This document shows, piece after piece, positions 12,785-16,842 of a DNA stretch of 64,000 bases. A program made the position numbers and the translations under genes. Positions within the stretch are counted from its first letter, which is position 1. Each line of letters opens with the position of its first letter. Under the pieces are notes generated by a model, which saw only the letters and a list, made by a program, of their open reading frames with translations, made no database searches and was not told the DNA's origin. Source of the stretch: Blepharisma stoltei ATCC 30299 (Eukaryota > Protista > Ciliophora); contig CBFDEM010000044.1 in assembly GCA_965603825.1 (NCBI GenBank), positions 186,001-250,000 of the forward strand, given 5' to 3'.

Positions 12785-14311
12785 TTATAAGCAATCTTCT
12801 CCTAATAGCCCATGATATTTAGCAACCCCTTTTTTTCTTTCATCAATAACCCATTGAAATGAAGTATTATTTAAAATTTCATCAAATAAGCTTGGGTTGT
12901 ATCCTAATGCGTATTCTAATTCGATTATATCTATAGTCATTTTGGAATTCATAGCTTCTTTTGCTTTGGTGTTAGAAGTAATTCCTGGGTCATAATTTGC
13001 TTCGATAAACCAGAGCTTCATGTTATCGTCCATAATAAAATCTAGCCCAAATAGCTCAAAAAGCTGAGGATGCCTGGGAAGCCTATGAAGGGCAGATCGC
13101 ATAATGTGAATGATGGCTGATTTTATAGTGGGCCGAAATTCTTTTTCTAGTCAATCAGAGCCAGCGTCCTTTCTCTCGACTAGATAGTCGAGAAATTGAG
13201 GGTACATTCAGCCTAAATCTTCTAGAGTTTCTGAAATAAGCTCACTTGTGTAGTTGTTTGCTTTAAAATAGCCCTTTGCTTGACCTGTGTTTGTAATGTG
13301 CCGCCAGCCATCAGTTGAGGTGATATTAAACTCATCAACAGAAATCCTTAAGAATCCATCGTGGTATAATACCATCAATGGATCCATACTGGCTACAAAC
13401 ATATAAGCTCTGAAATCGAATTTTTTGCCATTTATTAAGTATGGATTGCTTATGTATTTTTGAGCAATTCGTCCACTGTGAGATTTACAGCTGCCACTTT
13501 TCTCAAAGTCTTCTAAAAACGTTGAAGATAATTGTTTGTCTACAACTTTCACCCCAAAGCCTTGGTTACTTTCTTTTGCTTCTTTATAAATCCATTGGAG
13601 CTCATTTTGTGATATATTTTCTTTTAGGTTTTGCATAAAAAGAGCACACTCTTTTTCGTTACTCAAAATTAATGTATATGGAGTAAATGCTCATATATCA
13701 AAACATTGTTTTCGACCACTAAACTGCTCAGAATATTTTACTAAGTCCATAATACTTTCATCTTTTGCGTCAATATAGGTATTTCCTGGAATGTGATTAT
13801 ATCGTTGCCCAGGACACACAAAATGTTTCCCAATTTCCATAAACTGATGTGTATTGAATACCATATGGAAAAACATTGTGATATTTAAAGGCAAATGAGC
13901 AGGCTTATTTTTACGTACATTTGTTAAGTAATATTCAGGATATACAACATTGTAATTTTCTATAAGTGTTTTTTTAGTAAAATATCATTTGGGGAAGTTC
14001 GAATAAATTATCTTGTCCTCATGCACCGGAAGTCCTCTTGAGTCCAGCTTAACAGGGTTATTTAGTCTATATTCCTTAACACTATCACAATAATCGTCAT
14101 CTGCAAGGATTTTATGAAAATTAGGTTGATAATTTATTGTGCTTAAATAATATTTTCAAGCTTCAGATTCTTCATAGTTTTTATGTGTGATTTCTTCATA
14201 GATTTTCTTTAAAAAAGTTTCTTTTGAGATAGGGTGGCTTAAATAGATGCTTAAAATGTTCAAAAGCAGCAAAACGGATATGAGAGATACTACCACTGTA
14301 AATAATTTCAT
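12785..14311 (-). CDS. Tubulin-tyrosine-ligase-like (TTLL) ATP-grasp protein with N-terminal hydrophobic signal/anchor
   Basis: Single 508-aa frame through several TGA; YNHIPG, WIYK, QGFGV, AQKYISNPYLINGKKFDFRAY, HITN, FELFGLDF, WFIEAN. Confidence 0.87.
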
Positions 14312-14334
14312 ATTATATTTATAAAAAGTCTCAT

Positions 14335-14904
14335 TTACTTTAGAGCTTTATTTAGGATTTTCCAACTAAAGAACAAAATTATACATGCTACTCCTAGTAA
14401 GATGTGTATAAAAGTTTTTATTCATACACTTTCCAATTCTGTTTCAATGCTTTTCATTGCATCTAGTAATGAATTTAGCTTAGCTTTGTAGTCTTTATCG
14501 AAATTTTCAGCTTCTTCTGCGTTTTTTTTGATTTTTTGATGCAGATCTTTTTCTTCATATTCCACAATTTTACCTTCTAATGCAGATAAATTTTCACCTA
14601 ACTTATCAAATGATGCAATAGCATCACGGGTCTTATTTTCATTGATTTCCATAGTGCTTTTTGCTAATTCTGATGCAAATCTATCAAGATTATCAAGTGA
14701 TCTTCCGATTCTGAATAAATTATCTCTGAGATTATTGATTTCAGTCATGACTGACATGATATAGGATTCTTGACTGATATCTTTGAGCTCATGCACCAAG
14801 TCGGACACTAAGCCTGCTTCATTTTCAAGCTCTTTTTCTGTTTTAGCCAGCTCAATTATTTCTTCTCCGTGACTGATAACTCAGAAAATGAAGAACCATA
14901 TCAT
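14335..14904 (-). CDS. Type I membrane protein: signal peptide, coiled coil, C-terminal TM
   Basis: Reading TGA as W adds the N-terminus MIWFFIFWVISHG and the C-terminus WIKTFIHILLGVACIILFFSWK. Confidence 0.7.
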
Positions 14905-15036: not shown

Positions 15037-15042
15037 AAAAAA
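15037..15042 (-). terminator. RNA polymerase III T6 terminator of tRNA-Trp
   Basis: TTTTTT one base after the tRNA 3' end on the minus strand. Confidence 0.8.
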
Positions 15043-15043
15043 G

Positions 15044-15116
15044 TGAACCCAGAGCGACTTGAACGCCCAACCTGCGGATTTGGAGTCCGTTGCACTACCA
15101 GTTGTGCTATGGGTCC
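15044..15116 (-). tRNA. trnW: tRNA-Trp(CCA) with 4-bp anticodon stem (A27:C43 mismatch)
   Basis: GGACCCA TA GCAC AACTGGTA GTGC A ACGGA CTCCAAA TCCGC AGGTT GGGCG TTCAAGT CGCTC TGGGTTC A: 73-nt cloverleaf, CCA anticodon, A73 discriminator, intact A/B boxes. Confidence 0.96.
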
Positions 15117-15366
15117 TGCTTATTTTTCTGTAGTCTTGGCACGAATTTAAAGTCTTAATTTGAATATCTAATATAAAAAACCTCTCTAGATCGAAAAAAA
15201 TAAGTGTATGCAAGAAAGTATGGACCACTTTGGTCAGACCTTGAATTTTCCACATTTATTCATTTATCTATGAAATTCAATATATTTTTAAGGTTTATTA
15301 GCGTTCTTTCAGTAAATCAGACAAACTCTATTCATATTATAAATCTATTTTACAAAAATAATTAAA

Positions 15367-16842
15367 ATGACTTTAATTCTTTTCTGCGTGCTTGCAGCGA
15401 TAGCATCTGCGTGAAATCCAACAAATGGTTCTATAAACGGCTATTATAACCTTACAGAAGTCAACAATCTCTTAGAAGAATGAACCAAAATTCATAATGG
15501 AACAGAAACTTTTACAATCGGCAAATCGCTAAGAGGCAAAGAAATAAAAGCTTTTCGTCTTAATTTAGGAAAAGGTCCAGCTGTTCTTGTCATAGGCTGC
15601 CACCATGCTCGTGAACTGATCTCAACAACTCAAGTTCTGTCAATTTTGAACTACATCTTACAAGAAGAATCTGAAGAAATAGATTACATAAGAAAAAACA
15701 GAGAAATAATATTTATCCCAGTCTTAAATGTAGATGGCTTACAAAAAATCAGTGAACACTATGATAAAACCCATACAATCATCGATATAAGGAAAAATCA
15801 GAGACCAACAGAAACTTGTCCTGGAGACGACCATGGGGTGGATTTAAATAGAAATTATGAGTATATGTGGGGCTTCGACAATGAAGGGTCTTCAAATAAC
15901 TCATGTGGCGAAGACTACAGAGGAAGCTCCCCATTTTCAGAGCCAGAAACCAAAGCTATTAGAGACTTATTATTAAACAAATCATTTTCAGTAGCTGTTT
16001 CCTATCATAGCTGGGGTGACCTTTATGTGCATCCATGGTGCTATAGAAATTCTTTTAACCCTTCTGATTTAAGGCCTGAAGATTGGAGTCTTTATAATAG
16101 CGTAAAAACTATACTGCCAAGCACTGCCCAAATGGGGAATCCAAACCAACTTCTTAATTATGCTGTAAATGGCTGCTTTATAGATTTCGCATATTCATTA
16201 GGCATATTTAGCATGGCCGTTGAACTCGGGCCTGAAAATGATTTTCATCCCCCAATTGGCAAAGTTAAAGGTATTCTTGAAAACCATCTTGCTCCTTTTA
16301 TGTACTTACTCAAACACTCAGGCCCAGTTATGAACTTATGGCTTCAAAATTTAACAATCCATGGCTCAGTTGTGGAGTTTTATTTAGAAATTTATAACCA
16401 AGGCATGCAAGATGCTACAAACCAAACCCTCACATTTGAGCTGTCCCACGAGTATTCCATCCATCATTTCTTTCCCTATAACACTTTTGCGCACAACAAA
16501 AACGGCAGGCTCACAAATATCCATCTTCCTGCTATCTCTAAGCGCTCCAAACAGGCTATAATGTTTAAAATCAGTCTAGACGAGTCTGCAGACGAATTTT
16601 TATACAGCTTTTACTTCCAGCCCCATTCTCCTCTTAATGCCCAACTTTCTAACACCATTCAGTATAAGATAGTAAGAGGGAGCACTGCGGTCCTCTTATG
16701 GATTGTTATTCTCATTATTGCTCTTATAGGAGTCGCAGTAGTCGTGGTGTTCAGATTTACCAAGAAAAGAATCACCCCAATCAAATTTGTTGAACTTGAC
16801 AAATTTAACAAAGCCAACAGTCAGGGCACTCCTACCATTTAA
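15367..16842 (+). CDS. M14 zinc carboxypeptidase, membrane-anchored
   Basis: Signal peptide; HHARE, NVDG, RKN, GVDLNRNY, PFSEPE, YHSW, catalytic VEL; C-terminal TM; two TGA near the N-terminus. Confidence 0.92.

Follow-up and report, generated by a model that had tools for sequence, protein, structure and literature searches.

The 64-kb stretch of DNA that we analyzed (the window) contains a single tRNA gene according to both ARAGORN and Rfam. This is a full-length, 73-nt tRNA-Trp(CCA) gene at 15044-15116 on the minus strand (RF00005, 62 bits, E 5e-11). The gene, its parts and the two adjacent protein genes lie as follows:

15044-15116, minus strand: 73-nt tRNA-Trp(CCA) gene, with five further identical copies in the genome; corresponds to tRNA-Trp-CCA-49 (Contig_49:201116-201044) in Swart et al. 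(2023)
15074-15090, minus strand: anticodon arm with a 7-nt loop; A27 (15090) and C43 (15074) unpaired; C28:G42, G29:C41, G30:C40 and A31:U39 paired
15081-15083, minus strand: anticodon CCA, with C34 at 15083 (ARAGORN and pair-by-pair count)
15098-15109, minus strand: A box region, tRNA positions 8-19 (pair count and sequence)
15055-15065, minus strand: B box region, tRNA positions 52-62, with a GTTCAAGTC core (pair count and sequence)
15037-15042, minus strand: T6 run, putative Pol III terminator, with a single C between A73 and T6 (sequence)
15117-15121, minus strand: 5' leader AAGCA, present in all six copies, with divergent outer flanks
14335-14904, minus strand: protein gene of 189 codons with in-frame TGA at 14883 and 14424 and a TAA stop (contigs of putative RNA runs colinear)
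15367-16842, plus strand: M14 zinc carboxypeptidase gene with a TAA stop (PF00246, E 1.3e-46)

An initial annotation made from the sequence had described a complete tRNA-Trp with a CCA anticodon at this position, without giving its strand, and had pointed to an A27:C43 mismatch that shortens the anticodon stem to 4 bp. Both descriptions are borne out. The pair-by-pair count gives four pairs in the anticodon stem, cmscan also marks A27:C43 as non-standard, and the cloverleaf with a 4-bp anticodon stem is the minimum-free-energy fold of this tRNA. A protonated A+:C could pair weakly. The remainder of the molecule is intact, as the initial annotation had also stated. Pairing is complete in the acceptor stem (7/7), the D stem (4/4) and the T stem (5/5), the discriminator base is A73, and the Pol III signals (A box, B box and oligo-T terminator) are all present.

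To place this gene among its relatives, a DNA search at E<=10 was made across the genome (41.46 Mb in 64 contigs). Results from this showed six copies of tRNA-Trp(CCA), all 100% identical, at C44:201044-201116 (the window copy), C46:498318-498390, C14:161972-162044 and three positions on C4. Because the six genomic copies are 100% identical, A27:C43 is unlikely to be a sequencing error or the mark of a decayed copy, and we rejected both explanations. We also rejected a pseudogene, since all other stems are intact, the six copies are identical and tRNAscan-SE raises no pseudo flag, and a contaminant, since the copies are spread over four contigs among ciliate genes. The initial annotation had suggested a search for paralogues with a 5-bp stem. 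None was found at E<=10, a search that a very divergent gene could escape, and the published tRNAscan-SE table for the macronuclear genome of Blepharisma stoltei ATCC 30299 contains six Trp genes and no others, with the same coordinates as our six (Swart et al., 2023; 10.1101/2023.10.09.561518). In that table the window gene has a score of 57.7 and no pseudo flag. The sequence of tRNA-Trp-CCA-49 is identical to the window gene over its 73 nt, and the published gene (201116-201044) has the same five sisters and was given the same interpretation; we see no difference between the two descriptions.

The flanks of the six copies have diverged outside two short elements. A trailer of C plus T5-6 follows each copy (15037-15043 in the window), and the AAGCA leader is likewise kept. 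A tRNA-Asn gene in another locus that we retrieved (L017) does not have the AAGCA leader, and the predicted fold contains no leader-trailer pairing for AAGCA. Judged from sequence, leader and trailer may have been conserved as a site of transcription start or processing, or they may reflect how far duplication or gene conversion extended.

The initial annotation had stated that both adjacent genes contain in-frame TGA. We confirmed this, with two such codons in each gene, and both genes end in TAA. Those of the carboxypeptidase gene, at 15412 and 15481, precede the part that encodes the catalytic domain. The gene at 14335-14904 encodes hydrophobic N- and C-termini that flank a charged, coiled-coil-like middle, and its longest TGA-free piece had no Pfam match. 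Beyond it on the minus strand, a tubulin-tyrosine-ligase-like (TTL) gene at 12785-14347 contains five in-frame TGA codons; genes with a TTL domain number about 58 genome-wide, this one included. Both adjacent genes are spanned, with no gaps or joints, by Logan contigs that derive from four runs of a single study and are presumed to be RNA. This argues against introns that remove the TGA codons. The contigs start at several points in the carboxypeptidase gene; one set starts at 15408, which is too near the TGA at 15412 to count, and the others start at 15379-15395. Logan contigs over the tRNA carry the flanks of the copy at C4:914598. In runs X2 and X4 we also observed a second allele with many substitutions at 16205-16596 and 13546-13715 (in the carboxypeptidase and TTL genes), which in the carboxypeptidase is absent from runs X1 and X3. 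This allele is probably from a second strain in mixed mating cultures and not a product of editing.

To determine what TGA encodes, we compared 291 reading frames from the retrieved loci and the window by all-against-all alignment with TGA treated as X. Of 44 conserved paralogue columns with TGA, 34 had W as the most frequent residue opposite it. When all residues opposite TGA were pooled, 24.6% were W and 20.3% were TGA, compared with 0.8% and 0.6% in the background. This is a very large effect; the nominal p-value overstates certainty because paralogues are not independent samples. The TGA columns of the window's own genes are poorly conserved among paralogues and uninformative alone; it is the pooled set that points to Trp. 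Genome-wide, nearly all in-frame stops within TTL, M14 and S10 domains are TGA. The set of 110 long frames comprises 89 that terminate at TAA, 13 that terminate at TAG and 8 that extend past the locus ends. About one in three Trp codons is TGA. TGA also differs from TGG in context, with A at the +4 position after 139/249 TGA codons (56%) versus 154/423 TGG codons (36%; p about 1e-6). Swart et al. (2023) found the same +4 A bias (52%) and noted that +4 A favors near-cognate Trp readthrough in yeast. On the evidence of these coding sequences, the host nuclear genome reads UGA as Trp and uses UAA and UAG as stops.

The initial annotation had proposed that UGA is decoded here by the CCA tRNA through a C34:A mismatch and not by a tRNA with a UCA anticodon, and a nuclear tRNA-Trp(UCA) was the first alternative to look for. 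We found none by the following searches. A pattern search for tRNA-shaped genes with a UCA anticodon returned 13 matches versus 16 in a reversed control, which is chance level, and ARAGORN called none. With the tRNA-Sec model, the only match over the cut-off was at the position of the published SeC(TCA) gene. In a genome-wide RF00005 scan 63 of 2298 candidates were scored, and the completeness of the search rests on the published table. The published catalogue of 169 to 176 tRNAs agrees with our results; tRNA-Sec is its only UCA tRNA and it contains no Trp(UCA) (Swart et al., 2023).

A cognate decoder could also be produced after transcription or come from another compartment. C34 might be edited to U, or a mitochondrial tRNA-Trp(UCA) might serve the cytosol. 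In Leishmania, mitochondrial tRNA-Trp is known to undergo C-to-U editing; the mitochondrial genome of B. stoltei does encode a tRNA-Trp(UCA). We know of no established route for export of tRNAs from mitochondria to the cytosol. Position 34 was read as C in 172,863 and as T in 41 of 172,929 published YAMAT-seq reads (99.96% C34; Swart et al., 2023); a C34 modification without effect on reverse transcription would be invisible in such data. The 41 T reads are below the 57 T reads at position 35. This refutes the editing half of this explanation, and we consider it as a whole exceedingly improbable. The initial annotation had named tRNA-seq as a check on both editing and expression. The approximately 173,000 reads come from the six identical tRNA-Trp genes together (Swart et al., 2023), so joint expression of the six is documented; because the copies are identical, reads cannot be assigned to a single one, and nothing in these data is specific to the window copy.

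Swart et al. (2023) also describe a tRNA-like RNA of B. stoltei that is expressed, carries a CCA tail and may have a UCA anticodon. This raises the idea that a separate adaptor reads UGA and that the CCA tRNA serves mostly for UGG. According to the supplement of that study, the tRNA-like RNA has 7800x YAMAT-seq coverage with a CCA tail, is 93.8% conserved across Blepharisma species and was not found in Stentor, and B. stoltei has two non-mitochondrial TrpRS genes. The same supplement, however, describes this RNA as unlike tRNA-Trp and reports expression of TrpRS2 at 3.7 versus 98 RPKM. Moreover, no standard tRNA finder calls it, and a 4-bp CCA tRNA is common to Condylostoma, Loxodes, Blastocrithidia and Amoebophrya. 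We therefore regard a separate adaptor as very unlikely. A variant in which Trp decoding is split between the 4-bp CCA tRNA and the candidate UCA tRNA-like RNA, the latter charged by the second TrpRS and acting as a new kind of cognate UGA decoder, is given even less credence. This two-adaptor idea was raised in the supplement of Swart et al. (2023) and concerns another locus. Taken with the catalogue and the reads at position 34, these comparisons support the proposal that the CCA tRNA decodes UGA through C34:A, which is very probably right.

We examined the N-domain of eRF1, as the initial annotation had suggested. The genome contains three eRF1 genes in the retrieved loci:

L021:607-1917, minus strand: main eRF1, the same as BSTOLATCC_MAC3627 over the stretch shown (sequence match)
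L022:1453-2760, plus strand: minor eRF1 paralogue (sequence)
L023:1453-2751, plus strand: minor eRF1 paralogue (sequence)

The main eRF1 has several N-domain changes, among them a K in place of the T of TASNIKS and an A at 67/70. The residue at yeast position 67 (human Ser70) is Ala in L021, Ala in L022 and Ser in L023. The supplement of Swart et al. (2023) gives one Ala67 and two Ser67 for a set common to B. stoltei and B. japonicum, a small discrepancy with what we observed. Ala or Gly at yeast position 67 is a co-requirement proposed by Kachale, and it is disputed. Ala67 is also found in the standard-code heterotrichs Stentor, Fabrea and Climacostomum, and Ser67 is found in ciliates in which UGA encodes Trp (Swart et al., 2023). 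Ala67 is therefore neither sufficient nor necessary, and it is not diagnostic. The eRF1 of B. japonicum recognizes UGA most weakly among the three stops.

Both minor eRF1 genes carry TGA at codon 14, a conserved Trp of the N-domain for which the main eRF1 has TGG and the eRF1s of solved structure carry W. This too supports TGA as a Trp codon, and synthesis of the minor eRF1s thus needs UGA to be read. A feedback role for these codons is conceivable, but TGA is common here (about one in three Trp codons) and a single ancestral change would account for both. In the two minor paralogues SIKS also replaces NIKS.

In the mechanism that we favor, tRNA-Trp(CCA) is the ordinary cytosolic tRNA-Trp. Six Pol III genes encode it, and no other Trp isoacceptor is known from the macronuclear genome. 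UGG would be read by Watson-Crick pairing and UGA most likely by a C34:A mismatch. The open 27:43 position atop the anticodon stem would make the arm more flexible, and the near-cognate codon would then be better accepted in the A site. With the main eRF1 weak on UGA, this codon would be read as Trp and UAA and UAG would act as stops. We think it highly likely that tRNA-Trp(CCA) reads both UGG and UGA in this manner, with C34:A eased by the open pair and with weak competition from the main eRF1.

Evidence that the open pair matters comes from other organisms. Unpairing this position raised readthrough by yeast tRNA-Trp about 7-fold and abolished its dependence on eS30 Arg10 (10.1101/2023.06.19.543857). 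Unpairing also raised readthrough in T. brucei and yeast reporters with the Blastocrithidia and Condylostoma tRNAs (PMC13092985). We found no readthrough assay of the Blepharisma tRNA-Trp itself in the literature searched. By analogy with these systems, we infer that tRNA-Trp(CCA) would decode UGA in vivo and that A27:C43 would be the cause.

It could be argued that A27:C43 is incidental or of minor effect, and that basal near-cognate pairing of any tRNA-Trp(CCA) reads UGA once eRF1 has largely ceased to compete there, with help from the +4 context and from ribosomal features. The N-domain changes in the main eRF1 and the weak recognition of UGA by B. japonicum eRF1 fit this idea, as does the existence of 4-bp stems without reassignment. 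Paramecium biaurelia, in which UGA is a stop, has a 4-bp tRNA-Trp copy (Swart et al., 2023), and tRNA-Trp is exclusively of the 4-bp type in about 6.5% of bacterial genomes with the standard code (PMC13092985). From these cases it follows that a 4-bp stem alone is insufficient for reassignment. Several observations speak against an incidental mismatch. The 4-bp stems recur in eukaryotes reported with nuclear UGA = Trp, unrelated lineages included, and the mismatch is kept in 6/6 copies in B. stoltei. In yeast the 7-fold gain was obtained by unpairing alone. The initial annotation had suggested a comparison with standard-code heterotrichs such as Stentor, and this points in the same direction. 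According to Swart et al. (2023), tRNA-Trp also has a 4-bp stem in B. japonicum, B. undulans, Condylostoma and Loxodes; in standard-code Stentor and Fabrea the stem is always 5 bp long. In a sample of the structure file from that study (the first 27 or so entries), we found no other tRNA that lacks the top pair with its stem otherwise intact. We regard an incidental role for the mismatch as unlikely. This alternative concerns why UGA is read and the separate adaptor concerns which molecule reads it, and the probabilities that we attach to them need not sum to one.

As a comparison, the closest counterparts of the mechanism that we favor are Blastocrithidia nonstop and Condylostoma magnum. As the work of Kachale et al. 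(2023) is described in PMC13092985 and 10.1101/2023.06.19.543857, these organisms are like B. stoltei in having a sole Trp tRNA with a CCA anticodon and an open top pair, with no editing reported, in reading UGA as Trp and in having a main eRF1 with Ala at position 67. They differ in that the mismatch is A:C in B. stoltei and C:U in B. nonstop (26C.42U in the numbering of PMC13092985). All three stops are reassigned in B. nonstop and C. magnum, whereas in Blepharisma UAA and UAG are plain stops and UGA is apparently unambiguous. Readthrough was measured for the tRNAs of B. nonstop and C. magnum. Non-anticodon changes likewise permit a third-position C:A mismatch in suppressors derived from E. 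coli tRNA-Trp, both those in which the 27:43 pair is disrupted (Schultz and Yarus, as cited by Swart et al., 2023) and the G24A suppressor of Hirsh. These suppressors are bacterial laboratory mutants, unlike the natural tRNA of B. stoltei. The pair count showed that the B. stoltei tRNA-Trp keeps C11:G24, and it therefore does not carry the Hirsh change.

The gene, its 4-bp stem and the proposal that it decodes UGA were already published in 2023. That preprint (Swart et al., 2023), which is cited as eLife 2024;13:RP93502 in PMC13092985, already contains most of the checks proposed in the initial annotation, with data on expression of the tRNA and on the lack of editing and with Stentor and Fabrea as standard-code references for the stem. 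By 2026 Blepharisma was cited as an established case (PMC13092985). Our analysis adds nothing beyond this published result, which was rediscovered from raw sequence. In Blepharisma the case is clean, since UAA and UAG remain stops and UGA is reassigned. The mechanism indicates that a nuclear genetic code can be altered with the help of a change outside the anticodon, and it bears on the design of suppressor tRNAs.
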